Shown: positions 3,620-63,650 of the stretch, piece by piece
Position numbering within the stretch: the stretch's first letter is position 1
Layout of the letters: every line of letters begins with the position of its first letter
Assembly (NCBI GenBank): GCA_011109175.1
Contig: RDEW01000043.1
Location: 124,001 to 188,000 of the forward strand
Direction of reading: 5' to 3'
Source: Dicyema japonicum
Taxonomy: Eukaryota > Animalia > Dicyemida
DNA length: 64,000 nucleotides
The notes under the pieces: model-generated
Told to the model about the DNA's origin: nothing
The model's input: the letters and a program-made list of their open reading frames with translations, nothing else
Databases searched by the model: none
Translations under genes and position numbers: made by a program

Positions 3620-3835
3620 AAAATGGAACGAAAAGAGCCAACAGCTTCTCCCCACCGTCCGGTGGTCCTTTCATCTCCTGTGTCTTCGACTCTGTCTGGT
3701 GTCTCCATTTATCCAGACTTTTGATTCTTCTATGTGGAGACTCGAATTGGCACATTGATTGCGAGGACTGGGATCACCTAACTGTTTGACTCTTTTGTCT
3801 TTCTTTCTCGGTGTTCCCGGGGTTATTAAAAAAAT
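3620..3835 (+). mobile_element. 3' end of an I/Jockey-group LINE
   Basis: Ends LIARTGIT* (GGGATCACCTAA), then a ~60-nt UTR and CCCGGGGTTATTAAAA; same terminus as the RT-bearing copy at 39878-41100. Confidence 0.6.
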
Positions 3836-4199
3836 TAGATAACTATGTTTTCTTGGACATCAGAGACGGGAAAATGTAGAAAAGAAACAGGTTCAGGGTG
3901 TATCCCTGGGGTTAACTCTTGTCAGGACTATCTCTTAGATATGAAGTTTATTCTTCAAAAACGATTTTTTCACATAGAGAATTTTTGATCCAATCTTGTA
4001 TAGAAATCGGTGTGCTGTTTTAGTAGGGTCTGGGTCATCTTGAAGATATCAAGGTAAATTACGTAGAAATGAAACCTATGATCACGTCCAAGATGGAATA
4101 GATAATGCCCGCAGGACTTTACCAAACTAACCTTCGGTTATTGCTTGACGCGGTTGTTCAGCAGTGGACTGCAAACGGGCTTGGTGTTCCAAAGAACTT

Positions 4200-4930: not shown

Positions 4931-5306
4931 ATCATAACAACTTTACTTATTATCAATAAACTATACTTGGCTTAAATAAATAAGTTATATATTTAAAAAA
5001 AATAAATTTCACTCAAAAAAATGTTTTTAATAAAATTCAAATTAAAAACAACTTAAATCCTTTAACTAAGTTGCCAGGATTGCGTGAGCGCTCCCTCTGA
5101 TCACTGCTATTTCGAGCCTCTGTTTTAAATTCCTTTGAGTAGCTTCTCTTCTAAGGGATCTGTCGTTCAATATTGAAGAAAAAAGTGTCCATCATATCTC
5201 CCATAACCTTGGAAATCTTTATCGCAATAGAAACGAGATGATATATTTGCTGGAGTAATTCGTACTTTCTGGATATTCATAATTTTTTTAGGTTGACAAA
5301 AAAATG

Positions 5307-5378
5307 GGGCCTGGCCGGGATTCGAACCCGGGACCTCTCACACCCAAAGCGAGAATCATACCCCTAGACCACCAGGCC
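5307..5378 (-). tRNA. tRNA-Pro-TGG: tRNA-Pro(TGG)
   Basis: GGCCTGGTGGTCTAGGGGTATGATTCTCGCTTTGGGTGTGAGAGGTCCCGGGTTCGAATCCCGGCCAGGCCC: full cloverleaf, A and B boxes, anticodon TGG, followed by an oligo-T Pol III terminator. Confidence 0.97.
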
Positions 5379-15270: not shown

Positions 15271-15284
15271 CAGAATCTTATTTA

Positions 15285-15590
15285 TTTAATACCCCGGAAA
15301 TACCCGAAAGATGTCAAGTCAATTAACATCTAATTGGGGTATGTTCAGTTTCCACAGTCAAAGTAAGACGTGTTCTTGGCACAAACAAGCCAATCTATAT
15401 CCGTCACTGTTAGAACCCCTCCATTGGGGTAGGAAAAGAAAAGATTCTTTTTGAATGCCTCTGAACAGGTGAATGATTTAAAGAAGCCACAAAGCAAAAA
15501 AGGAATTCTTCGACCAGGTAAGCTACTTAGGAATCGAACCCAATATTTTGTCCTGAATTTCTCGGCTGCCTATAAATAAATTAGCAAAAT
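15285..15590 (-). mobile_element. SINE family 2 copy
   Basis: Minus strand has B box GGGTTCGATTCC (15531-15542), CTTACCTGGTCGAAG, a core shared with 29463-29770 (CTTTTCC..TGGAGGGGTTC), and the tail CCGGGGTATTAAATAAATA. Confidence 0.75.
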
Positions 15591-15599
15591 AAGGAACTA

Positions 15600-15830
15600 G
15601 TTTTCTGAACTATCGATTCACATTCAACCACATTGTTGTTGAGACAACTGGAGGAATAAGTAGGAAATCGTTTCGTTTCCTAAATAAACTTGGACGCCTA
15701 GCTACACTAAAAAGCTATGGCGCACGTGAGACCGGTGGCTTTTCCAGTTGATCTCTGTTGCAAGCGTGAAAGGCAACGCAATGTCGATAATGTCGGCGGG
15801 AACCACTTTTGATTGATTTTTGTGTTTTAA
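15600..15830 (+). mobile_element. CRE-like RLE C-terminal fragment
   Basis: Near-identical to 39690-39870 and 43020-43185 (AAACTTGGACGC.TAGCTACACTAAAAAGC...GGCAACGCAA.GTCGATAATGTCGGCG). Confidence 0.85.
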
Positions 15831-17149
15831 TAGTTTGATGTTTTCAGAACCAAATTAGTCCTTGAGAAATGAAAATTAAAAGATTGTCATTTTCAATTGG
15901 AAACTATTCGACTTTACTAATTTCTCGTGAAAAATCTATTATTCAATAATTCTCCTGTGCATGGTGTTCATTACACGGTGATCTGCGGTTTTTTGTTCAT
16001 AACGAGTTTTTATGGTCTCAAGGAAGGAAGTTAAGAGTTCAGCTGGGACGTGTCGGGATTGGAGATTTGGTCTTTACTCGTGAAATAGTGAAGCACTTAT
16101 TTTTCCTGACGAAGGATTGTATTTATTATGTAATATCTCGGAAGATGAGGGGGTTGTTGTTGATTTCCTTTCTAAGAGGGTGATATTTGGGTTTGTATGA
16201 TTTGAAACTCCAATTTACTGGTCGCAAAAATCGCTATTCTTAAAGTTGAAACTTTAGGGAAAACTTAATTGACTACAATTAAAGGATTCTTGTGCCATCT
16301 GTTAGCGGTATCTCGAAATTAAGTGTAGTTATTGTCTAATCTGCAGAAATTAAGTTATTATAAAGTAAACAGTGCTAATTAAGTTATGGGGAAGTAACAT
16401 GAAACGTTAGGGCTTGCCTACCGACTTCTACCAAGAAAGTCTCCCCAAGATTCAACAAACACAGGGTTATAAGTTCCAGATTTTTAGTGCGGTTTTTGAA
16501 ACTTCGAATAAGATTCTCTATAGTTCCGCCAACCTTGCACAGTTTTACCTTCAACCATGGGGAAATCGGCATACGAGGATTTCTCTCGTAAGCAAGTTTA
16601 GAGCAAACCGCGTTTTCTCAAATTTCTTGAAGTCTCTTCTTTTCGAGGATTACCATTTTTCCAAATCATATAACATTCGATGAATCTTCAAAAAGAGAGT
16701 TTAATTCTGTTTGTTATTCACAATTTTGCTAAGATTATTCGAGTATTGAATAATCTTGTTGTTTGCTTCAGAAATAAATTTCCTGGGCACCTTTATTGTG
16801 CCTCACTCAAGACAGAAATCGATTTTCAGAAGACCACGGTGAGTCATTAGAAAAGGTAGAAAAAATTGAGAACCTTACACACAAGATGTTGTACGGGATA
16901 AGATGTGGACATCACTAAAATATCAGCTCATACCTTTATAAGATTGGGTCTACAAAAAACCAAAGAGACAACAGAACATTTACTCTTCTATAAGGGCTTT
17001 CTTTGGTTCATCGGGTTCTCATCGAAAAAAATGTTGACCGGACGCTTAGTTAGCTAGGTAAATGTACCTCCACGTTACCTATAAGCATATTAATACTTAG
17101 GGTTCGGCTTGTGTGTACTCCTAACTATCCGTTCAACCAGTTTTCTCCA

Positions 17150-19530: not shown

Positions 19531-19694
19531 AAAAAAATTATTTTTATCCTCGATAGATCATCGTTAGGACATTCAATCTGCTTCGATATTTACAGTAATT
19601 GGACTTTTTTATTTCAGCTTTGAAATATTTGTAATTGAATATATTCTGGAAATTTTAACTTTTAATCGGATTGGTAATTCTAATTTATTAACCC

Positions 19695-20003
19695 TGGATA
19701 AGTGTAAAGAGTTCCGGACAAAAAACCTAATGGCATATAGTTCGAATCTCGTTGCTGAAGGTTAGGTTCACGCATCTACGATGTCTTGGTTTTACAAGTC
19801 ACGTCGTCACCATTGAACACCTCACTGCGGAACCGGATCTTCTATAGAGGACTCACACCTAAAAAAGTAAAAAGAGGTGAATAGAACTTTTGGGTCTTCC
19901 TCTACGATTAGATTGCAACGTGTTCTTTACTTAAAAATAAAGTGTGTGTCCTGCCCGGGAAGAGCGATAGCTTATATGACTCTGTAAAGTGTAGCTTTAT
20001 TAT
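19695..20003 (+). mobile_element. SINE family 1 copy (diverged), head-to-head with the previous copy
   Basis: GTTCGAATCTCGTTGCTG, CACGCATCTACGATG, CACTGCGGAACCGGAT, AAATAAAGTGTGTGTCCTGCC, TTATTAT tail. Confidence 0.85.
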
Positions 20004-20079: not shown

Positions 20080-20310
20080 CATAACCCCGATTGTAAGAAC
20101 TCTCAGGAAATGATTCATTGGAATAAAGGAGAGCAAATAATTTCCTATGACACCGTTTTTGCATTTGGTGCATCATGAGAAAGCCTAATCACATGACGCA
20201 TAACTATTTAAACAAAAGAAGAAAGGGACAGAGTACAGGAAAGATACCTTCTGTCATGTAGTCATCGGGAAGATTCGAACTCTCGCATACATATGACATT
20301 TTAGCTATTA
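20080..20310 (-). mobile_element. Probable SINE family 2-like copy, degenerate
   Basis: Minus strand TAGCTAAAATG...GAGTTCGAATCTTCCC (A/B-box-like) and terminal CGGGGTTATG. Confidence 0.45.
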
Positions 20311-22738: not shown

Positions 22739-24049
22739 TGATATTAGAATTTATTTTAATAAATATTTTTTTATCCATTAAAATATTTGAATATTTTTTT
22801 GAATATTCGAGTTAAGGTTTTTTACAATTAAGAGTAGTTCGTGAATGTTGTCAGGAAGGGCACAGAGATATGGCCGATCGTCCAATTCTGTTTTTATAGC
22901 TTTGCAAAACCGTATGTTGTCGTAACGAAGCGTATAAAGTGGACACGTTTCCCGAGGAAGGGAAGCTTCAAAGCTTTTGGTGGCTTTGTAGAAACCCAGT
23001 GAGACGCGACTTACTGGTTCAATTCCCCGAATGGTTCGAGTAATGTGAGCTTCATCACCAAGGGTAAACGTTTTTACCCTTGTAGAGTGCCTCGTGTCTG
23101 GTTAAATTAACCTGATTTGATAAAATTTGATATTAAGACACGTGGGAGTGATCTTGTTATGATTTAGCTTTAGTATAATTGCATCATTCCTTTGAAATTG
23201 TGGGAGATTTTCATAATGATACCAAAAACTATTAAATTAACCAATGAGTCACCAAGTACTCCATTGGCAGTCTCCTCGTGGTCAAACAGAGGCCAAATAT
23301 CTATAATCGTCACGACTAATTAATCCAAGGGCGGAAGCCAAGGGAAAACGTCTACTTATGTCTACCGAATGCATTCCCCAATGATCCGTTGCATGCTTCC
23401 GAAGTGAAGTGGAGAAGTAGGTTCGCCCTCTTCCATTTTCATCACATGTCCTGCCACGGACATCACTTCATTATTAGGCGGAAGAGTTTTCATAATGGGA
23501 ATCTTCACCAAAGGAGTTGGTCAGGGAGAAGCATCAGTTGTCCATCTTCCTTTTGCTATCAACGATTTGATAAACGTAGGAAGGAAAGGATTATCAAAAT
23601 TATTTTCGTCTGAAAATTATTTCTTTTTTTGATTTATAGTATCTTAAGTTTCTGTTTAGCATTTATTTACTAATTTTAAATTGAATAATTCTATAATTTT
23701 GGTTGTTTGAATTATTTTATTATTTTTCAACATGTGATCTACCTTCTAAGGAGACGCTACAAAAAATCTCTCTTCCCTACTCCACTGGTGGATATAAATG
23801 GCTATGATGTTCGAAAACGATGAGTCCCACTCTGATCATGGAGCCGAAATCACTTAGTTGAGAATTCTATTTCTTTCCTTTTAACCCGTTGATCCTGGAA
23901 ATAAATAAATAATAAGCACTTTCACGATAATAAAATTATAGCTTGCGCATGCAAAAAACAGTTTAAATGTCAATCTCTCATATTCTGGTTAATTAACAGT
24001 CTCAATAAATTTAGGTTATCTACGAATTTTAAACAAACGGAAAAAAGTG

Positions 24050-29227: not shown

Positions 29228-29400
29228 TATTTCTTTATTATTAACCCCGGATACACCGAAAATAAAGTTAACAATTAACAACTAATTAAGTGTATCAAGT
29301 TCCCATTGTCACAGAAACAGAGTCTTCCCATATCTAAATCTCTAACAAATCTCCAAACGCGGATGGATGCAATGGCAAAGTAAAGGACAATGGAAGTAAA
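29228..29400 (-). mobile_element. SINE family 2 / I-group LINE 3' tail fragment
   Basis: GATACACTTAATTAGTTG...TTCGGTGTATCCGGGGTTAATAATAA on the minus strand; similar to 15285-15370 and 39878-39946. Confidence 0.7.
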
Positions 29401-29462: not shown

Positions 29463-29770
29463 ATTTATTTAATAACCCCGGGTATAGGGGAAAGGGGTAA
29501 TAAACGTCTAAATAAGATCGGAGTTAGGTGGATCCTTTCCAAGAATCACGTGCATCCATATATGCCATTATGGGAACCCCTCCAGTGAAGTGGAAAAGAG
29601 AAAAATTCTTTTAGGATGCCGCCCAAGCACTGGGTGTTTTCTGAGACAGGTGGATTGCAACACGTTTTTTAGTATTTAAAGAAGGCACAGAACAGAATCC
29701 TTCTACCAGGTAGGTGTGGAATCGGACCTGCTACATAGATAATCGATACATAGAACGACAACAATAACCC
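29463..29770 (-). mobile_element. SINE family 2 copy
   Basis: GGTCCGATTCC (B-box-like), CCTGGTAGAAGG, core shared with 15285-15590, tail CCCGGGGTTATTAAATAAAT. Confidence 0.75.
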
Positions 29771-30289
29771 TATTTATTGATCCTACAGAATGTTTACACT
29801 CCAAATTTCGACATGTAGTCTTACGAGATAATATCCCTCTATTCTTTGGAACACAAAAGTTTTAAGTGTTATCTCCAAAATTGGTGTAGGCCACTGTCCT
29901 TGACATTAGTTAACTAAACTCAAAATTGATTGTTGAAGCATTAACGATAGAATAATATTGGGCGAACTTTATTATTAAGGTTTTCATGTTGGTCATCTGC
30001 TTGTAGAGTAACTGCTTTCATTTGTAGTGAACAGACACAACCTATCTCCCTACCAACTACCAAATAGTTTGTTTGCTCGCTTCGCTCATAGCATACTAGC
30101 TCCCGAAGGGGGTTACTTCCCAACGTCACACATCCTATCAGTCGTTTTTCCATTTTAGAGATGTCATTTTATTATTAAAAATTATTAACCCATAAATTCC
30201 ACTTGAAAGATTAATTATCAAATTAATTAAAAGTATCCAAACTTCAAGGTTCTTTTAAGGACATTAAACATATAATTAAGGACCTAAAC

Positions 30290-36348: not shown

Positions 36349-36419
36349 CCCGAGGTAGCTCAGGGGTAGAGTGGGAGACTGTAGTTCTCTAGGTCCCGGT
36401 TCGAATCCGGGTCTTGGGA
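36349..36419 (+). tRNA. tRNA-Tyr-GTA: tRNA-Tyr(GTA), intronless
   Basis: CCCGAGG TA GCTC AGGGGTA GAGT G GGAGA CTGTAGT TCTCT AGGT CCCGG TTCGAAT CCGGG TCTTGGG A: C1-G72 and A73 Tyr identity elements, immediate T-run terminator. Confidence 0.92.
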
Positions 36420-36959: not shown

Positions 36960-39880
36960 AAAAATAGGAACATTTTATTTTGGATAATAATCTGACGCTA
37001 CTCGTTGTGATCGTTGTGGCGCTAAGAGCAAAGATGAGAGCCTTGATCCAATTCGTCGGGATCACTTAGTTTAGTTTTTTTGGATGATCCATTCACGGCC
37101 TGTTCGTGTGGCTTCCACATGTCCTGTGGCGGAATGACTAAAAAACATTCCGATTGGCACTGTCGGTCATGTCTCCTACTAGATAATACGACATACTCGG
37201 CCCTACCCTTCTGAACATGTTCCACTAGACCATCAGGAAATACTTGAATTGATCTCAAACTGACACACACACGAAGACAACTGATCAGGATCCCCAAAGC
37301 TCCGTATATCTGTCGCGGACTGCCTATGTGAGTGTATTGAAAGGACAGTCTCTTCGGACGACTCTGAGGATTGGCTACGATTATTTTGCTTCTCTCCATT
37401 CACATTATGCATACCCCATTGGAGGGGAAAGAGGAGAAATCACTTACGTCATTAGTAAAGGAGAATGTCCACACATTCTTCTCAAGGAACCCATTGGCAG
37501 ACTCAGAAAAGCTCACCTACAAATTTCAAAACCATGAGAAGCCAACATTGACTATCTCGGACACTCAGAGATTAAGAAGTGCGATCCGTCGAAAACTTTC
37601 GGAAGGTGGTATCCGTGCTGCGGTGAGGATCCTTGGAGATCAACAATGTATAATTGAGCCGTCTGAACAGTCCTACGCATCATTTGTTGAGCGACACCCA
37701 AGTCTCCCCAACGACCACTGGGTTACCCCTTGCCCAGGACAATTTCCCAATCTACTTGTCTCTGAAGAGGACGTAAAAGATGGGATTCTTTCTTTCGTCC
37801 CGAGTAGCAGTGGAGGACTAGATGGGCTCCGTCCGGGTCATTTCAAAGAGCTCACTGCTCATAACATGGGCAACTCGGATCCGGCTCGTGTTGGCTATTA
37901 CCAAACTAATGAACAGGATGCTATCAGGGACACTACCAGAAACAATTCGACACGTAATGTTCTCCGCAAAGTTAATCGCATTTGACAAGAAGGGGGGGGT
38001 GGAATACGCCCTATTGCAGTCGGCCTGGTCTTCTGTCGGTTGGGCTCAAAGCTTGTATGCAGAGCGATCCTGCCTACGCTGATAACACAGCTACAACCAA
38101 CCCAAATAGGGGTCGACACACCGGGGGGTTGTGAAGCGGGAGTTCATGCTGTCCGAACATTCACCTAAAAGAACGTGAACATTCCTCACGTCAAAATTGA
38201 CATTAAAAATGCCTTCAACTCGATACGACGTGATACAATTCTGGAGGATTGCTTCACATACTACCCATCAGTGTACAGCTATATTCATAGCTCGTTCGGA
38301 AAACCATCCAGTCTGGTACACGGCCAATATTACATTCCATCGTTTTCTAGAGTCCAACAAGGAGACCCACTGGGACCTGCCTTGTTCAGCCTGGGAATTG
38401 CCCGTATCACAGTATATTGTTCCACTCCTCTGAGAGTATGGTATTTGGAGATTGCACCATGGGCGGCCACCCGAAGGATGTACTAGATTGTTTGAAAAGT
38501 CTGATAGTACAATTGGAATCCCTATGCCTAACTCTAAACACCAATAAGTGTGAAGTTACCAATTTTGGATTTCCACAGTCTGAATGAAATCCGATCTTTG
38601 GTATGTTCAGAGAGATCATTCCGAATGCCATAGAAACCAAATCAGAACAACTGGAAATACTTGGATGCCCTCTTACTGATGCTGGAATCAGTAACACTCT
38701 AAGAACAAAAGAACATCAACTAAAAACAACATTCAGACGTCTGGAGATGCTGGACGCACACATCTCCCTATTCCTCCTAAGAAACACCTTATCAGCACAG
38801 AAACTGAACTACGCTCTTCGGGCACCCTGCTACTTGAAAATGCGACAGCTTGATGCTATCGATTCCCTCTTCCGGAGTACTATTGAACGTATCACAAATG
38901 TGAAATTTGACGACCAAGGGTGGGACCAAGCGACCCTACCTGTTAGCCTGGGCGGACTGGGAATCCCTTCAACGAAAGATCTGTCTTGCACTGCTTATCT
39001 ATCCTCTTTGGCTCCAGCCGACTGCTGGTCAGGATGATTCTCCAACTCCAGACAGAATCATCTGAAATCACAGAGATGGAGCATTTGAAGGGGATGATGC
39101 CTGAGCAGAAAGATCGTTACAGGACCATCCGCGAGGATAAATATGAGAGGCTTCTGAACCAATCAAACCAACACAGACGTGCCTGTCTAGTCACTGGAAG
39201 ATGCGAATCGAGTGGCGCATGGATCAATGCACTCTCAGTTGGCAGTGTCGGGACCCACCTTGACGACGATACTGTCCGCATCGGCATCTCCACCAGACTT
39301 GGACTGGAAATTTGCCGGACCCACAAATGCCGATGTGGCGCAACTGTCGATTGTTATGGACTCCATGCCCTCTCTTGTCGAAGGAGTGCAGGACGATTCC
39401 CAAGACACAAGGCGATCAACGGGATTGTCAAGCGAGCCCTGGAGTCTGCGGGATACCCAGCCATACTAGAACCTGTTGGTCTGGACAGAGGAGACGGAAA
39501 ACGTCCCGACGAGATCACAATTTTCACATTCGAAGAGGGGAAACCTCTGGTCCAGGACACTACTTGTGTCGACTCCCTTTACCGTCCAACATTGTCGAGA
39601 GCGCGGTAGACACACTCCATGCGGCGAAAAAAATGATGAGGGCAAAGGAGAAGAAATACGAAGCGCTACGCGACCGATTCGCGTTCTAATCCATTGTGGT
39701 GAGACAACTGAAAGAATAAGTGGAAAATCGCTTTGCTTCCTAAAGAAACTTGGACGCTTAGCTACACTAAAAAGCCACGACGCACGTGAGACTCGGTGGC
39801 TTCTTCAGTTGATCTCTGTTGCAATCGTGAGAGGCAACGCAACGTCGATAATGTCGGCGGGGACCACTTTGGATGAATTT
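36960..39880 (+). mobile_element. CRE-like element, near full length (PHD-like finger, RT, CCHC, RLE), frameshifted
   Basis: SSGGLDGLRPGH, DIKNAFNSIRRD, VQQGDPLGPALF, LGGLGIP, HKCRCG...HALSC, RHKAINGIVKRAL, DGKRPD, QLISVAIVRGNA. Confidence 0.93.
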
Positions 39881-41100
39881 ATTTATTTAATAACCCCGAA
39901 AAGGGAACACCAAGAAAGAAGGAGTAAACCAACTAATTAAGTGATCCCGGTACGCCTCAACAGGATCGAAAGGTTTTTCCTGTGTTCCTCCAGAGTACCC
40001 ACGGCTTTCCTGAATAGACGACGATCATCTTTCATTAGAGTTTGAAGAGTAGTGGGTTTTTTCTCTAAATTTCGTGTATTTGAGCAAGCATTGGAAAGAA
40101 AAGATCGGGGGGTAGATTCGTTTGACGTGCTAGCTTTCCAATTAGGGTATTGATCTTATTTGATATCGAAGCTCCATAGGCCCATGAGGCACAAGCGTAC
40201 TCAATCGTCGGTTTTAGGAGTTGATTGAACACGACGAGGGCGCATTCCTGTGAAGGTTTGGATTTCAAGAGCGGTTTGATTATATTAAGTTTCCTGAGAC
40301 CCTTTGTGATAACGTACTTCACATGTTGAGAAAATGTCATCAAAGGGTCAAATGTCACTCCCAGGATAGTTGGACGAATCTGTAGTGGTAAGGAGTCTCC
40401 AATAATGTTCAAGTCCAGTGTATGTTTTTCTTTTCTGTCCGTGGTGAAGATTGTATACGTTGATTTATCCCTGGATACGGAGAGACGATTCAACTTCAAC
40501 CAGGCTCCCAGGTCGTCAATATGTGACTGAAGCTCTGATTTTACTGTACCCACGTATTTGTTCCTGCTAGCGATGATTAGTTCGTCAGCATAAGTGAGAA
40601 GCATTGAATCTGGTCCTCCAGGGCAGGGTAAATCGTTGAGGAACAAGTTGAATAATGCCGGAGAGAGGGGCGATACTTGAGGGACGCCATTTGGTAGGAG
40701 ACGGGACCTCGATCTTGCGTGGCCTATACAGACACGTCCTCTTCTTCCGGAGAGAAAATTGGCTATCCATCTTTTCAAATCCGACTGAATGGTGGTGTCA
40801 AAAACCTTCTTCGTGAGTAATATTCTCGAGACAGAATCGAACGCCTTCTGGATATCCAGGGAAACCATTATTGTCCGTAGATGGCGTTTCGGTACGTTGA
40901 ACCCTTCTGATATAAATTGAGAAAGTGAAGTCAAATGTGTCGTAGTTGAACGCTCACATTTGAAACCATGTTGAAAGTGGCAGTCGGGCAAATGGGGTTT
41001 AATTTTCCAGAGTACGAGTTTCTCCATTAGGCGCGATAATGCGCACGTTAATGAAATTGGACGGTAGGAAGAAGGTGATGTTCTCGGTTTTCCTGGTTTA
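39878..41100 (-). mobile_element. I/Jockey-group LINE, RT to 3' end
   Basis: ORF 40065..41027 QHGFK..RSTTT...LDIQKAFDSV...GVPQVSPLSPALF...YADE...ILGVTFD; C-terminal ILLRRTGIT*; tail CGGGGTTATTAAATAAATAAAT. Confidence 0.92.
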
Positions 41101-41404
41101 AGAATTGGTATTATAAGTGAGTTCTTCCATTTGGATGAATGGCAGTTTTAAATAAAAGAATAAATTTGTGTTGGTTTAAAAAATAAAAATAATTTTTTAT
41201 ATTCTCTTAAATCTCGATTTAATACAGTCAACAATTTATAAATTAACTGTTTCTTTTCATTATTACAATTTAGAGGGTGAAATATTTAATTGCGTTTCTT
41301 GCAGCCCATAGGTGTAAACTCCAAAGAGATTGTGCTAATGGAATTAATAGCCACAATGAGATGGATAACTATGTAACCACAAAAGCAAATAAATAGAGAA
41401 ATAA

Positions 41405-42689: not shown

Positions 42690-43185
42690 AATAGCTTTTC
42701 TGTTTGAGGATTATACGTTTAAACAGTCCACTACCATCGATTGTTATGGACACCATTCCCTCTCGTGTCGAAGAAGTGCAGGACGATCAACGGAATTGTC
42801 AAGCGAGCCTTAGAGTCTGCGGATTATCCTTCATACTTGAACCTGTTGACCTGGACAGAGGAGGCGGGATCACAATTTTCCCATTCTAAGAGGGGAAACC
42901 TTTGGTCTATGACGCTACTTGTGTCGACTCACTTTGCCCATCCAACATTGTCGGAGCGCTGTAGACACACTCCATGGCGCGGAAAACGATGATGACAAAG
43001 GAGAAGCAATACGAAGCCGATTCGCGTTCTATCCCATTGTGGTATAAGTGGAAAATCGCTTCGCTTCCTAAAGAAACTTGGACGCTTAGCTACACTAAAA
43101 AGCCACAACGCACGTGAGACTCGGTGGCTTTTCAGTTGATCTCTGTTGCAATCGTGAGAAGCAACGCAACGTCGATAATGTCGGC
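42690..43185 (+). mobile_element. CRE-like RLE fragment
   Basis: Near copy of 39330-39870 with internal deletions. Confidence 0.88.
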
Positions 43186-43619
43186 GAGGACCATGGTTGT
43201 CTGTGTTAATCATTTAATCTTGTTAGAAATTAAAACTTCCTTTAAATTTGTGCACCCTGTACTAAATTCAAGATCATTGGTTGCAAGCTTTCATCAAATA
43301 CCTTAGCTTTTGAAATGATGATACCTTCAGTAATAAAACCATTAATTTCATCCATCCTTGAAATACATTCAACAAGTGAATTATCAAGTTGACGATGTTC
43401 ACCTTGTTAATCGTAGTTTCAGTCTTCCAATTTTTCAAGGTTTTAATAATTTGTGAAAGTGTCGAAATTCCCAAATAAAGGTTCATTTTAATATTACAGA
43501 TATGGATTTATTCTCTGAGAGTCATTTTTGATGTATTTTTTCACAAATTTTCTTTTCTGTGCAATAGTAATTTGATTTCTAACCATGTGACACTAAGATT
43601 TAAATTTAAAATGTAAATT

Positions 43620-45862
43620 CATTTAAATGTGGAATATATACAAATTATGGCCACTAATGTGAATTGGTATTTAATGGCCGAGTACTTCTGGATCTCACCG
43701 ATTCTGCTGCGTTGGCCGCAGATCCAGGTTTCTGAGCAGATCTCAGAAGGAGCCAAGTGGAGAAGGTATCCACACAGGTTGCATCCCAGACCAATAATTT
43801 TCCGTGTAAATATTGGAAAAGCGTCTTGCAATCTCCACGATCCAGTCCAACAGGATCCAATTAGCTAAGAAGCCTGCTGCCTCGAGGGTTCACAGAATAA
43901 CATTATTCATGCGACGTGACGAGGTGAGTGACCTGCACTCCTTTTGCAAGACAAAGGATATAGTCCTTTGGTATCAACTGTTCCTCTACAACGGCATATA
44001 TGTTTCTGGCAGACGTTAAGTACCAATCGTTGTGCTATTCCGATTCTACAGTCGTCGTCCATAAGATTTCTGAAAGAAGCGCATGAAAATGCGTGGAGCC
44101 ATGCACCACCCCATGTTGTGCAGCAGATAGCAAACAGGCAAGCCGTGTTGGTTCGACTCTTAGTAAAGCTATCAACGATAGCCTTGCAGGAAATTGCGTC
44201 CCATTTGTTCTGATTCGAGAAATCATCCGGTATTGAAAATCCTGCTTACCTCCACCGCAAGCCAGCTTCGTCAAATACAGTGTCCAAGTAAAGTCCAGTA
44301 GGGTGACGTAGGATTTCCCGGACGAGATGACTGCAGCTCGAAAGCAACGATAGGTATGATGGATGGGAGATCTTGAAGGAGGTTTGCATTGTGTCCAACC
44401 CAGTTCGTCAAACGTAAATTCAGTAGTGACAGTATGCCTTAGCGTCTGATCTATACTCAGTAGCAAATCTTGATGTCCAGGCACAGGGAACTCCGCAGTG
44501 CGTATTCCAATTTCGGCAAACATAAGCTCTTTTTCATGAGGAAAAAAGGATGTGTGGAAGTCCAGAATAGCAAGTTTTTTCGTAAAGAGGGAAAGCTCCT
44601 CCGCTTTGGACTCTGGGTGTATCCGTAATTCTGTATTGTTGAGTGGGCATCCAAGAAAATAGACTTGCTCAGGGGGACGACAGATATTCCCGGTAATAAT
44701 AATAACAACAGCCTTTTCATAAGAGCCATAATATTTATAGCTCCGCATAGGCAGGACACACACTTTATTTAAGTAAAGAACAGTTAATTTTAACTAACCG
44801 TAGAACCAAGGAATTATCTTCACTTCTTTTTTTCTTGTGTGTGGGTCCTTTCTAGACAATCCAGTTCCGCAGTGAGTATCCACTGATGACGGCGTCACTC
44901 GTCAATCCCTTTCCGCATTGTAGATGCGTGGAACCTTCTACCAGATGAACAGCAGCAAGAATCGAACCCGTTACCTAAGCCACTTTAGTCCGACACCTAA
45001 CCACTATGCTACCCGGCTCCCGGTAATAGAATGTTAAATATTCCTGCCACGCGGAAGAAATTGTTTTCCATTTATAAAATATTGATAAGTTCAGATTTTT
45101 TATGTTGACCTCAAGGCCGAGATCATGTAAGGCAGGTACAAAGTTCGATAGACTGGTATAAACATTTCTCCATGTCCCTCCAATTGTCGTCATCGAGATA
45201 CCAGAGGTTGAATTCAGTATCGACGGAACGAACGACTTGATCGACCGTCAATGCAAAGAGGAGTGGTCCTAACGGGTCTCCTTGCCGTACTCCGGACTGC
45301 GACTTGATAATTTTATCCCGAACCCAGAGAAGAATTTGATCCGTATGAAAGATTGACAATGGGAATGGGTTCAGGAGCTTGCTTTCTGCTTAATTAAATG
45401 ATAAGATCTCTCTTTAACCAATTGAAAGCATTAGTGATGTCCAGCTTTAATCCCAGACACGGGATTATTTTGGTTTTTTGTGAGAAACAACTCATTGCGT
45501 TCACTGAGGCTTCACATCTGTTACGTACCACTAAACCCAGGTGGATTGGGATAATTCTTCACTGATCCTTGGAGAGACAAGCCTGGAAGCAATTTTTGCA
45601 GCCAATCTTCGGAAATAGTTGCCAGCTGCAATGGAATGGGCGCCTCTATCACTTTTTTTGAAATCCAGTAGGTGGGCAGAGAAGGTCCCGTGCATGGAAT
45701 ATCCCCATTGATTATACGGTAGATAAAATTAGTGATCGAGTTGACGAGATTATGTACAGCTTCAGCTGTAGGACAAGACGACAGATCCTTGATATTGCCC
45801 TGACGTAGTCCATCCAGTCCTCCGCTGTTACTGGAAGCAAACAATGTAATCGAGACTCTCAT
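43620..45862 (-). mobile_element. CRE-like element, RT to 3' end, interrupted by a SINE
   Basis: SGGLDGLRQG, SGVRQGDPLGPLLFAL, WYLDDD, LPKLEYALRS, DRGDCK/LVWDATCVDT. Confidence 0.9.
44699..45017 (-). mobile_element. SINE family 1, full length (319 bp) with an 11-bp TSD
   Basis: TSD TCCCGGTAATA at 44688-44698 and 45018-45028. Removing it restores CRE frame NILLPGISVVPLSK. Head GCCGGGTAGCATAGTGGTTAGG (A box)...GGGTTCGATTC (B box); tail (TTA)n. Confidence 0.95.
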
Positions 45863-48243
45863 GGAGAAAACCGAAACGAAATCATCAGTACGAACTCTTT
45901 GGGATCAAACAAAGCAGATAATCTCCAAATCTGCTGATATATGCATTGGAGCTCGATATCATCACGCCCTAAAATTTGATCACCACCCGATCGTGCTAGA
46001 CATGGCAAAGCATTGCAGAGAACTAAGGCTAAAAGCGGCAGACACGTCAGACGAGAGTATAAAAAAGAGCTTAAAATCCAACAAAGGGAATTAAAATGGA
46101 AAATCAAAAAGATGAACAGATAACATTCACGGAAAATTATTACATCCCTATTAAAAGATGTGGAATGCCTAAAGGACAATTCAAGGATGTTTGCGGCTGC
46201 TGTGGACAAAGAAAGGACAAAACGTCCTTCACATCAAAGATACAGAAGGAAAATTCGTGGGTAATCCAGAAGAAAAAGCAGAATTAATTGCACGTCACTT
46301 TGAAATGTTGCTGAATATAGACAATTAGGAATTTCCTCTATTCCAGGGAGTACTGAGGGCATTAATGAATGCCATCCCAGTGGAAGAAGTTGAATCAGCT
46401 CTAAATAAACTGAAGAATAACAAGAGTGCTGGACCAGACAACATAAGCCCTGAGCTATTAAAATATGGGCCAAAAAAGTTAGTGAAACAATTGCAAAAAC
46501 CCTAAGTGACAGCTTTGAAACTAATACCGATCTAGGACTTGGAAATGGATTATTAATATACATACAAAAACCGAATAAAGCAAAAGGACCAGTAGATAAT
46601 CTCCGCCCGATCATACTTCTGAACTCGATACGCAAGGTGCTGCCAAACATTGCACTACGTCGGATAAAGGGTGTGGCGGTTCCATACATACCAGCAAGTC
46701 AAAGTGGGTTCCGAGAAGGGAGGTCTACAGCGGACATTGTATGGAGCCATAGATGGCGCTGTGGCAAAGAAAAGAGCGCAACGACCGTTTTGGGAATAGA
46801 TCTCTCCAGAGTTTTGACTCAATAACCAGACAGAAACTGATGACTGTGTTTGAGCAAATATTGGATTAATCGTCAGTTAAGATAATCAGACTACTACTTG
46901 CGAACACAAGACTATCTGTGAGGACAGAAGGAGCAACTTCCCGCAGTTTCAAAACAACGATTGGGACACCTCAGGGTGATTCCCTCTCCCTTTACTATTC
47001 ACCATATACCTTGATTCTGCCGTAAATGCTATATAGGAGACATAGAAGAGACATCGTATGCGGATGATGTGGATTTTGTATCACGGGACGCGACCGCAAT
47101 CCAACACCTACTATAAAGTGCACCTGCGGAGCTTGAGAAATGGTTTCTCAGCGTAAATGTAAACAAAACTGAAATTACTGAAATCAAAAGAGAAGACGAT
47201 ATTACTCATGAAAGATGGAGATGTACTAATAAGCTCGGCTCTCTACTAGGAGACGCTGAAGATGTACTAAAAAACACTGGCAAATGCGGCAATGGCTAAA
47301 CTGAGGAAAGGATGGTTAAGAGCCAAAGGACTTGGAATTGACATCAGATGCAGGCTTTACAACGCCTTTGTGAAACCGATCCTACTGTACAACGCATGGA
47401 TATGGGAATGTTCCTTCAACGAACTATTGAAACTGGATTCGTTCCATAGAAGGCAACTAAGAAGCTTACTCGGAATGGAGTGGCCATCAACAGTGGTATT
47501 TACAACAAGTGTATGTGTTCGTACATCAACAAGGATGTGATAGATGCCTGGTGGAGGCTATTTGGACATGCATTAAGAATGAACCCGGACGCACCCGCTA
47601 ACAAAGCGATGGAAGATTACTTTGACAGTTGCGACAAACCCTTCTGCGGACCACCTAGATCGACACTTCCGACTGCCATAAACAAAGATATAAATCGCGT
47701 GAGAAAAAATCTAAAGACGGGGGACTTTCGACATAGGAAGATGGAAGAGATTAACGCTAAATATTAATTCTATGAGTGTTGAGATCACTAACATTGTTGA
47801 GATCACTAACGAATTGAGATCACTAACATTCGACAGGGGAAGATGGAAGAGATTAACGCTAAATATTGATTCTATGAGTGTTGAGATCACTAACATTGTT
47901 GAGATCACTAACGAATTGAGATCACTAACATTCGACAGAGGAAGATGGAAGAGATTAACGCTAAATATTGATTCTATGAGTGGTTGAATCCACTAACATT
48001 GTTGAGATCACTAACGAATTGAGATCACTAACTTTCGACATAGGAAGATGGAAGAGATTAACGCTAAATATTAATTCTATGAGTGTTGAGATCACTAACA
48101 TTGTTGAGATCACTAACGAATTGAGATCACTAACATTCGACAGAGGAAGATGGAAGAGATTAACGCTAAATATTGATTCTATGAGTGTTGCACATGCGGG
48201 GCTATAAACATTTTGGCTTTCCTGAAAGTGCCTCAATAATAAT
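45861..48243 (+). mobile_element. RTE-like element, 5'-truncated and decayed
   Basis: KNNKSAGPD, LRPIILLNSIRK, QSGFREGRST, GTPQGDSLS, YADD, KLGSLL, RLYNAFVKPILLYN, WRLFGHALRM; (TAA)n tail. Confidence 0.9.
47725..48190 (+). repeat. Tandem repeat, 102-bp period, ~4.6 units, made from the RTE C-terminal coding segment
   Basis: GAAGATGGAAGAGATTAACGC starts at 47737, 47839, 47941, 48044, 48146; each unit holds three TTGAGATCACTAAC subrepeats. Confidence 0.97.
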
Positions 48244-60629: not shown

Positions 60630-63600
60630 TTGGTTGAGCTGGTGACGTGGCTCTTGATCTCAATGTCTGGAAAACACAGTTTCAAGTCATCGGACTTCTC
60701 CCTTCTCACGTTTAACGTCAGGGGACTCTCTAGCGTTTGGAAACGGAAGGAACTGGTCGAGGATCTTTCAAAATACAAGTTTCAATCGCCTGCCTTCAGG
60801 AGACCAAACTTATAAACGGGATCGAAGAACAACATGGGAACTTCCGACTAATCTTCCTTCCAGGTGGAAACAAGCACTATGGGCTAGGATTTGCGTCAGG
60901 AAAGATCTATCCAGGAGAGTCTGCCGATGTTACAATGTGAATGATAGAATCGGGGTGTTGCGATTGAAACTGGATGACCTCAACCCGTCGAAGAAATATC
61001 TAACTATAATAAACGTGTACGCCCCTCATAGTGGATGGCTTAATAAAAACCCTGATGAGATTGATGACTTTTACACCAGTCTTTCTGCCGTTTTCTCCAA
61101 GTATGCTCTCTCAACATTAGTAATGATCGCAGGAGACCTAAATGCGAAAGCTGGCACCCAGGTTACGACCGATGAGACATTCATGGGAAGGCATGGTAGG
61201 GGGAAAAGAAATCTCCCGGGAACTCTACTAGCTAACTTCTGTCAAACGAACAACCTATTTTTATGCAATACAGCCTTCATGCATCCAGCCAGACATAAAT
61301 CTACGTGGTCGGGACACAGAACAAACCCGAAGGGCGAGTGATAAATATGTACAACCAGATCGACTATATCATATGCAGGCAAAAAGATCGAGGAATTATA
61401 CTTGATGCACGAGCTTATGGTGGATCGATTATCGACAGCGACCACAAAATGGTTATTGCTAGACTTTCTCTAAAGAGATTTATGGTACTACAAAGAACGA
61501 AACGGAAGCACATTGAAACCACAGAACCCAACTATAGACGTTATAATCTGGAATCCTTAATCAGTCAATCAGAAGGGGCCCTAGAATTCAAAGAATATCT
61601 GGATGCAGAACTAGAAAACATGCCTACAGATTTGCCGCCCGGAAAATCCTGGGATTTTGTAAAGCACTCAATACATAAAGGAGCCAATCTGCATCTATTG
61701 AAAGAAAATGAGAAAACCCCATCGCACAATGAAATTTACACGGTGAAGGACCTTGCCAATAAACAGAAGACCATATGGATGCTATATCAAAATACTGACG
61801 ATTCGAACGTAAAATCAAAATTGCGGCTAGAAAGAAAAACTATCAAAGCAAAAATAAGAAAAACTATACGCCAGCATAACAGAAATAAAGCACTGGACCA
61901 GATTAAGAAGATAGAATCTCTCAAGGACAACGCTAGATTTTACGAGGCTGTGAAACAGATGAAAGGAAATAGAGCCCATCAACCGATAATGATAAGAGAT
62001 GACAAAGGAACGCAAATTGTGGACCAAATGGAAGTGGCTGAAATTATCGCTGCCCACTTTGGAAAACTTTTTGACCCAAGGAACGACACTATCAACCTAG
62101 AACGAGGAAAATTGGACGAGGAAATCACACCATATGAAGTTGAACTTGCGAGTTCCAAGTTGAAAAACAACAGGACTCCTGGCCCCGACGGACTCGCTGG
62201 TGAATTCTTCAAATATGGAACCCAAAAGCTGTATGAATGCATCGCTAGGATCCTGAATGAAATGTACTATTATGGTCACACGCTGACCCTGGGAGAGGGT
62301 ATCTTGATACCTGTACATAAGGCGAATAAACCAAGATCTAAGGTGGAGAACCTCCGTCCGGTCATATTAATGAATTCACTTCGGAAAATTCTGGCGAACA
62401 TAACATTACAAAGGATGGAAGGACGCCTAGATACTTTTCTGTCGCCATACCACAGCGGATTCCGAAAAGGAAGATCTACTTCCGATGTTTTGTGGTCCCA
62501 CAAGTGGAGATCTGCGGCCGTTCAAAAGTTCAAAATGTCTACAACCATCCTCGGAATCGACATTTCGAGGGCCTTCGACTCTGTCGACAGACGGAGGCTA
62601 ATACTGGTTTTGGAAAGTTTCCTAGACGCTTCACTGTCAGAATGGCCACCACCCTCCTAGCTGATACTTGGCTCACTGTAAGAGTCGGGGGAGCCTTGTC
62701 TCGCCGATTTGAGACGACTGTTGGCACTCCACAGGGAGACCCATTATCACCTATACTTTTTGTCATATACCTTGAAGCTGCTTTACGGGAGTCAAAACCG
62801 ATAATGGGTGAAAAGACAAACATTATTGCGTATGCTGACGACGTAGACTTTATTTCAAATGACAAAATACCGCTCACCCGCTTGATGGAAGAAGTGTCTG
62901 GAAGACTAGCCGAATGGTTCCTAACAGTAAATCCGGACAAGACTGACGTAACTGAACTCAAGAGGGAAGAAACAAGGACGGAGGAGTACTGGCGCAAATG
63001 CAAAAAGCTTGGCTCCCTCCTAGGAGACCATGAAGAAATTACGAGAAGGAAAACCCTAGCACAAACTGCCCTCTCCAGATTAAAGAACATCTGGCTTCAC
63101 AAAAAGGGCCTTGACATTATAACAAAAACTCGATTATACAACTCGCTAGTGAAACCCATACTACTATATAACGCTGGTACCTGGGCCTGCTCAAGAAATG
63201 AACTGAAGAGGCTTAATGCGTTTCATAGAGACCAACTACGGCATATGATGTTCGAAAGAAGTGATACGAGGATGTCATCTAATCTTCTCTATAAGAGGAC
63301 GAAGACCTCAGAAATTTCTAATGAGATTCTGGATACACGATGGAGGCTTTTCGGCCATATTCTGCGACTGGACCTAGATGCCCCCGCGAACGTAGCCATG
63401 GAGGATTACTTCATGTTGGAGGCCCCCCGTTTCCGTGGTCGCCCAAGGACGACACTGGCAGTCGTTCTCGACGAGGACCTCAAAGAAATGGGACGGCATC
63501 TTGCAAGTGGAGAGGATCTGGACTGGTTGCGCGCTGCGGCTTTGAATAGGAGGAAGTGGATGAAACTAACCAGTGATTTGCTAACTCGTGTTGCACATGC

Positions 63601-63650
63601 TTTGTCAAGTCCTATGACATAGCGATAAGTGCTTAAATAATAATAATTTC
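60630..63650 (+). mobile_element. RTE-like element, near full length (APE plus RT), about 4 frameshifts
   Basis: TFNVRGL, ACLQET, INVYAPH, AGDLNAK, NQIDYI, SDH; RT TPGPDG, RPVILMNS, GTPQGDPLSPILF, YADD; (TAA)n tail at 63637-63648. Confidence 0.95.

Follow-up and report, generated by a model that had tools for sequence, protein, structure and literature searches.

A SINE family of Dicyema japonicum with a tRNA-like head and a tail that matches a LINE 3' end

The window analysed, a stretch of 64,000 nucleotides from Dicyema japonicum, contains at 29464-29790 on the minus strand a SINE copy of a family here termed F2a, composed in order of a tRNA-like head, a head-body joint with the sequence ACCTGGTNGAAGG(A)TTCC, a core of ~70 nt and a LINE-derived tail of ~90 nt. 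An nhmmer profile made from 18 genomic copies and run across the window matched this copy at 29464-29770 with E=3.1e-73, the 5' end being placed at ~29790 from the head alignment, and recovered a second minus-strand copy at 15281-15600 in which the 5' part of the head is decayed (match at 15281-15542, E=5.2e-48; B box and joint read directly). Both of the copies that an earlier note on this DNA had placed at 15285-15590 and 29463-29770 are therefore real. Each has a motif resembling a B box, contains CTGGT(A/C)GAAG(G/A)ATTC, shares its core with the other and terminates in CCGGGGT(T)ATTAAATAAAT.

The D. japonicum genome has been reported to comprise 67.5 Mb in 377 scaffolds, with a GC content of 36.7% and 49% repeats, and SINE families are not described in that report (PMC6736024). 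A search of the assembly (67,542,437 bases, 377 contigs) returned 319 first-look candidates for the 29.5-kb copy, 40 of which were scored, genomic counts here and below being lower bounds, and alignment of genomic candidates resolved two subfamilies, F2a and F2b, with core and tail in common. The former is old, having a median identity of 79.9% to its own consensus, and the two window copies are likewise ~21% diverged from that consensus (~79% identity); no target-site duplications were detectable at either of them. The 18 tRNA-headed copies come from different contigs, align from end to end and have unrelated flanks, so that F2a is a dispersed, multicopy, non-coding repeat family of ~330-350 nt with defined ends. 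Two lesser matches were obtained in the window: an additional F2 core fragment on the plus strand at 23731-23867 (E=3.2e-15, model positions 143-322), absent from the earlier note, and a weak and decayed F2-like remnant on the minus strand at 20153-20282, extending from the B box to the middle of the core. The latter scored only 10.9 bits over model positions 63-185 in a targeted nhmmer search, and the window-wide search gave no match there, which weakens the case for the possible copy previously suggested at 20080-20310.

The tail of the 29.5-kb copy (29464-29546, minus strand, ending CCCGGGGTTATTAAATAAAT) aligns with LINE ends, and BLAST gives 95% identity over its last 21 nt to 39879-39899, part of the 3' module of a minus-strand partner LINE at 39879-39948. 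In that module the triplets GGG ATC ACT TAA (Gly-Ile-Thr-stop, 39948-39937) form the 5' arm of a stem, and the untranslated region (UTR) holds the 3' arm GGTGTTCCC together with the terminus GGGGTTATT(AAAT)n. A second 3' end of the same LINE (L055), 93% identical, fixes the LINE terminus at 39879; its frame is open for ~100 codons, and the window sequence in that frame ends ...KNLSILLRRTGIT-TAA, a comparison which places the true stop codon at 39939-39937 and gives a 3' UTR of 58 nt. Throughout the family alignment the tail is colinear over ~90 nt with the 3' ends of two LINEs as well as with further ends of LINE type, the common part running from the last codons through the stop codon into the UTR. 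The consensus of F2b is 79.7% identical over 74 nt to the LINE end at 39879-39947, and the match of the SINE terminus to a LINE end at 39878-39946 proposed in the earlier note thus holds; consensus sequences were made for the non-coding SINE families only, and for none of the LINEs. A further element whose end belongs to this tail class (GGGATCACC...GGTGTTCCCGGGGTTATTAAAA) was recognised by alignment with the other tails at 3752-3839 on the plus strand.

The 8-bp stem in question reads GGGATCAC/GTGTTCCC in the LINE, GGATACAC/GTGTATCC in F2b and GGATATAC/GTATATCC in F2a. When 25 LINE, F2a and F2b ends were aligned, 83.8% of the cells of the stem were paired, as against 15-56% when the partner strand was slid, and compensatory changes were present in six of the eight pairs, values attained by none of 500 shuffles. 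The terminus GGGGTTAWT(AAAT)n is likewise common to the LINE and to F2. A BLAST comparison of the two window SINE copies with the LINE end covers only 21-28 nt, a result that would suit a low-complexity, AT-rich coincidence with no LINE/SINE partnership behind it; such a coincidence is nevertheless exceedingly improbable in view of the colinearity of the family alignment, the retention by compensatory change of a stem that contains G+C, and the genomic count of the 18-mer CCGGGGTTAWTAAATAAA, which with at most one mismatch occurs 1008 times compared with 0 for its reversed control.

Several tRNA-headed copies in the sample have different 3' ends, so that the head need not be accompanied by this tail. 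A variant tail, GGATCAC...GTGATCCTGTGRCAATAA, was recorded in some F2 copies (L008:1426-1500, L021:1427-1500, L022:1590-1660); the retention of the same stem in combination with another terminus suggests a second LINE subfamily as partner.

The partner LINE copy in the window is 5'-truncated and comprises the reverse transcriptase (RT), C-terminal region and 3' UTR at 39879-41147 on the minus strand, with RVT_1 as the only Pfam match (E=1.8e-22) in the ORF at 40065-41027 and the frame open back to 41147. It is without 87 bp that L055 has just before the C-terminus (40065-40090) and carries YADE in place of the RT box YADD (40450-40470, both on the minus strand), differences which mark it as a dead copy. 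Elsewhere in the genome, among 8211 candidates, there are copies whose proteins are 94-97% identical and whose frames are open for up to 655 aa, and one 84%-identical copy in which this rises to up to 900 aa. Matches to an AP endonuclease of the PF14529 type lie 0.9-1.2 kb upstream of the RT in partner copies on five contigs (C327, C328, C367, C323 and C330), and a full-length relative that is 42% identical over the RT (P0026) contains PF14529 and RVT_1 only, as do three other full-length relatives (P0041, P0044 and P0050).

These features bear on the clade of the LINE, which the earlier note had assigned to the I/Jockey group. An RNase H domain downstream of the RT marks the I clade of LINEs, whose 3' ends are expected to be (TAA)n, those of Jockey being poly(A); the I/Jockey group is further said, after Khazina and Weichenrieder in 2009, to encode a type I ORF1p with CCHC zinc knuckles. 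By way of contrast, RNase H (PF00075) was absent from all 120 nearest relatives of the partner LINE, a few of which have a PHD finger, and none of the 253 zf-CCHC candidates genome-wide was situated in the few kb preceding the LINE copies on C327, C328, C330, C367, C323, C1 and C235. Neither (TAA)n nor poly(A) was found at the end of the partner LINE, which consists of the stem followed by GGGGTTATT(AAAT)n. On these three points the assignment is not established: judged by its sequence, membership of I appears unlikely and membership of Jockey stands unproven, and the features fit a CR1/L2-like LINE of the 'stringent' kind at least as well.

Protein searches with the RT returned almost exclusively unnamed metagenomic proteins, together with one relative bearing the transferred name 'putative reverse transcriptase - house mosquito'. 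The nearest named relative was a gene model of the host octopus (P0003, Octopus sinensis LOC115231815), 51% identical over the RT part, a resemblance that could reflect a common clade, contamination or horizontal transfer.

The window also contains LINEs of a contrasting, RTE-like clade. One, at 61305-63650 on the plus strand, has RVT_1 and DUF6451 domains and a 3' UTR of ~25 nt ending (TAA)n; another is represented by a plus-strand 3' end at 48194-48240, with traces of RVT_1 and DUF6451 upstream, whose hairpin matches the tail of a different SINE family, F1 (F1 positions 275-308 at 85%). An RTE element as the partner of F2 is contradicted both by the RT identity of only 25-33% between the F2 partner and the LINE at 61305-63650, and by the difference between a 58-nt hairpin-bearing UTR with (TAAA)n and one of ~25 nt with (TAA)n. 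Since the tail of F1 corresponds to an RTE-like end and the partner of F2 is a distinct LINE, the two SINE families rely on different LINE groups; in this respect the earlier note, which had derived the F2 tail from a LINE other than the partner of F1, was correct.

At the opposite end of the element, the better preserved F2a copies begin with (G)ACC(A/G)GGT..ATAGTGGTTAG, which includes an A-box-like motif, and continue ~42 nt further on to the B-box-like motif GTTCGATTCC. Written as family motifs, the A box T(G/A)AC(A/C)(C/T)AGTGG precedes the B box G(G/T)TTCGATTCC in these copies at a spacing which is tRNA-like. In the 29.5-kb copy the B-box-like motif is GGTCCGATTCC (29718-29728, minus strand; direct reading), which aligns with GTTCGATTCC of the other copies and, as the earlier note had it, lies ahead of the joint. 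ARAGORN called no tRNA in 58 loci, and Rfam at E<=1 gave no match of any kind in 10 loci; the designation 'tRNA-like' accordingly reflects the two boxes and the distance between them. The controls for the comparison of heads were the genuine tRNA genes of the window used here, Pro-TGG at 5306-5378 on the minus strand and Tyr-GTA at 36349-36419 on the plus strand.

That comparison was made with F1, the consensus of which (329 nt, from 31 copies) is 94% identical to a minus-strand copy at 44694-45018. When the F1 and F2a consensuses are aligned locally, the best match pairs ACCTGGTGGAAGG-TTCC with ACCTGGTCGAAGGATTCC, and corresponds to the head-body joint, ACCTGGTAGAAGGATTC at 29695-29711 (minus strand) in the 29.5-kb copy and 44930-44947 in the F1 copy. 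No other local similarity links the two consensuses, their bodies being otherwise unrelated, and the view that the F2 core differs from that of F1 is upheld. The joint ACCTGGTNGAAGG(A)TTCC is conserved at family level in both families. A hidden Markov model of the F2a joint matched 29 of the 31 F1 copies at the same place with 7-9 bits, and a model of the whole F2a head gave colinear matches of ~83 nt to 28 of 31 F1 heads, the best at E=3.5e-5, compared with 0 of 31 shuffled heads and neither of the true tRNAs of the window. However, the joint of 17-18 nt carries almost all of the whole-head score, the tRNA-like part alone reaching at most 1.7 bits in F1, so that the earlier proposal of a head shared with family 1 is supported only in part.

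The starting point of that proposal, the identity of CCTTCTACCAG at 29699-29709 and 44934-44944, was read in both places. The corresponding site is CTGGTGGAAGG in the F1 consensus and CTGGT[C/T/A]GAAGG in F2a copies, and because the two consensuses differ at the central base the exact identity of the 11-mers in the window is partly luck. To that extent the earlier note's own reservation, that the 11-mer might be shared by chance, has force, although the joint motif is conserved in both families.

Two accounts of this resemblance require consideration. The first, that F1 and F2a gained tRNA-like heads independently and that the joint arose by chance or by convergence on a functional motif rather than from a common ancestral head, draws on the lack of significant F1-F2a similarity in the tRNA-like part alone, on the partly fortuitous 11-mer, on the fact that F1 aligns to tRNA-Pro and tRNA-Tyr with about the same score as to F2a, and on the modest significance of the joint, which as the best local match at any position has P=0.012 against dinucleotide shuffles. 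It is rendered rather unlikely by the position of the joint, which in F1 and F2a alike directly follows the tRNA-like part (11 nt past the B box in F1 and 13-14 nt in F2a), by its conservation not only in the F1 copies matched by the joint model but also in the majority of F2a copies and in F1-like copies of greater age (...GGTTGAAGGTTCC), and by the colinearity of a whole-head alignment that neither shuffled heads nor real tRNAs could reproduce. The second, that head plus joint descend from a common source or were exchanged by recombination, is the likely one as judged from these alignments, albeit for a demonstrable common piece that is short. Older F1-like copies (73-77% identical), in which the head is more diverged and the joint is the same (...CGGTTGAAGGTTCCACGCATC), were found in the window at 19680-19983 (plus strand) and elsewhere at L026:235-590, L014:1696-2045 and L037:2374-2670.

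The second subfamily, F2b, differs from F2a both in age and in its 5' module. It is young (median identity to consensus 95.7%) and joins the F2 core and tail to another 5' module, GCCRCGTGGCGCCATGTGGTGCTGCGTGG..., as exemplified by L023:1406-1725, L030:1378-1701 and L039:240-563. A 20-mer from the 5' end of F2b has 643 genomic occurrences, compared with 0 for its control, and the module was recognised neither by the head profiles nor by ARAGORN or Rfam. Target-site duplications of 8-15 bp accompany four of ten young F2b copies, and their location 11-23 nt upstream of the conserved start indicates that the 5' ends are ragged. The window contains a 5'-truncated F2b tail fragment at 29230-29324 (minus strand; 85.4% over 96 nt to positions 230-324 of the F2b consensus). 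The tail fragment earlier noted at 29228-29400 is consequently genuine as a truncated tail, but belongs to the sister subfamily. The further suggestion, that one tRNA-derived head 'now parasitises' two LINE clades, is not sustained, the tRNA-headed F2a being old and the young user of the tail, F2b, having a different 5' module.

The absence of a recognisable head from young F2b copies, together with their ragged 5' ends, might be taken to mean that F2 elements are internally deleted or 5'-truncated LINE derivatives, that is, bipartite non-autonomous LINEs in which the boxes are incidental, rather than pol III SINEs; elements of this type that feed SINE bodies have been described (Kojima 2018, PMC5786205). 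Such an origin is very unlikely given that F2a has a defined 5' end and A and B boxes spaced in a tRNA-like manner, that the 1.27 kb of readable LINE has only the tail in common with F2a, and that the F2b 5' motif was not present beside those partner LINE copies that were cross-checked. F2 is therefore supported as a genuine non-autonomous retroposon, a SINE and not a LINE fragment, in agreement with the earlier note, which had named an internal LINE piece as the case that would count against it.

The core common to both subfamilies has the pattern GGCGTCA..GATCC.ACCTG.CAGG.GACGCC..TGCC.GGCA..GGATC, and in the 29.5-kb copy (29596-29670, minus strand) the helix order P1-P2-P3-P3'-P1'-P4-P4'-P2' is possible, which is the topology of HDV-like ribozymes; in the core alignment 74.9% of cells are paired, as against 31-44% with slid partners. 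The ~70-nt core may thus be able to fold as a nested double pseudoknot, as modelled from the pairing pattern. Folds of the HDV-like class reportedly occur at the 5' ends of non-LTR retrotransposons, as Ruminski et al. are said to have described in 2011. The likeness of the F2 core to them is confined to the order in which its helices are possible: it is situated in the middle of a SINE, it matched no Rfam ribozyme family, those of the HDV type included, its covariation in the sample was no higher than that of shuffles (226/500), and in F2b the strand joining P4 to P2 is without C. A literature search with three core motifs for likeness to the named SINE domains Nin-DC, Meta, Deu, V and CORE yielded nothing relevant.

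The same core is present in a third short repeat family (g3), in which it is followed by ...GGGGACAATGTCGTTACCTGG; 785 candidates were recorded, 86-94% identical, among them L039:1850-2010, L034:2354-2457, L038:80-183 and L019:1365-1468. No long ORF was found downstream of the core in g3 elements, and the 41 best genomic g3 matches adjoin no endonuclease match among the matches listed.

Considered as a whole, F2 is very probably a LINE-mobilised SINE with a LINE tail, and its head-plus-joint ancestry is likely to be common to F1. On this explanation pol III would transcribe F2a from the A and B boxes of the tRNA-like head, and the reverse transcriptase of the partner LINE would copy the SINE RNA into new sites, recognising the 8-bp stem and GGGGTTAWT(AAAT)n. 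The F2a tail itself would have been copied from the last codons, stop codon and 58-nt 3' UTR of an APE-type LINE, and F1 and F2 would most likely go back to a single ancestral head-plus-joint that had acquired different bodies and tails by recombination, the tails being RTE-like in the one case and from the F2 LINE in the other.

Recognition of this kind would parallel that in 'stringent' LINE/SINE pairs such as eel UnaSINE1/UnaL2 and the tortoise pol III SINE/CR1, known from the work of Okada, Ohshima and Kajikawa as cited in PMC4758252, in which the two partners have a common 3' stem-loop and short terminal repeats. F2a resembles these in its tRNA-related head, its LINE-copied 3' tail, and an end formed by a stem and a short tandem repeat with no poly(A). 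It differs in that the 5' stem arm of its partner consists of the last three ORF2 codons (Gly-Ile-Thr) beside the stop codon, and in that the pairing of F2 with its LINE is known from sequence alone.

The exchange of heads, cores and tails is well documented in modular SINE superfamilies, namely CORE-, V-, Deu-, Ceph-, Nin-DC- and Meta-SINEs and the 'jigsaw' SINEs of molluscs (PMC4758252), and tail exchange among SINEs has been described separately (Kojima 2018, PMC5786205). The D. japonicum families conform to this pattern in that the F1/F2a head and joint are found with bodies that differ and with tails taken from separate LINE groups, and in that one core recurs in families with different 5' modules (F2a, F2b and g3); they depart from it in the brevity of the element demonstrably shared by F1 and F2a, which amounts to 17-18 nt together with A and B boxes of a generic kind. 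Modular SINE evolution being well known (PMC4758252, PMC5786205), only the species and the particular families are new here, and F2 exemplifies clearly, but in no unusual way, the assembly of SINEs from interchangeable modules, leaving general SINE biology unchanged.

A more ambitious interpretation takes the form of two readings, firstly that the joint GGTNGAAGG(A)TTCC is a reused point of recombination or template switching at which one pol III head has repeatedly received new bodies, and tails from unrelated LINEs, and secondly that F2b, at present a successful user of the tail (at least 600 copies, ~96% identical), has dropped the tRNA head entirely. These are quite unlikely to hold. If F2b had truly dropped its head, core and tail could promote retroposition even when preceded by a 5' module that matches no known small RNA and is not demonstrably the 5' end of a LINE. 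Returning to the very probable explanation of F2 as a LINE-mobilised SINE, at least two LINE lineages in D. japonicum would each support SINE-type parasites made of shared modules. The families should be of use in annotating the repeat half of the reduced Dicyema genome, and, with a small genome of 67.5 Mb and both LINE groups young, would offer a compact system for the study of tail recognition and module exchange.

Another repeat, ending ...GTCGATAATGTCGGCGGGGACCAC, was encountered on the plus strand of the window at 39347-39866, 42737-43193 and 15614-15832; one copy stands tail to tail with the minus-strand LINE (39866-39878), and a second lies directly against the 15.3-kb SINE copy on its 5' side.
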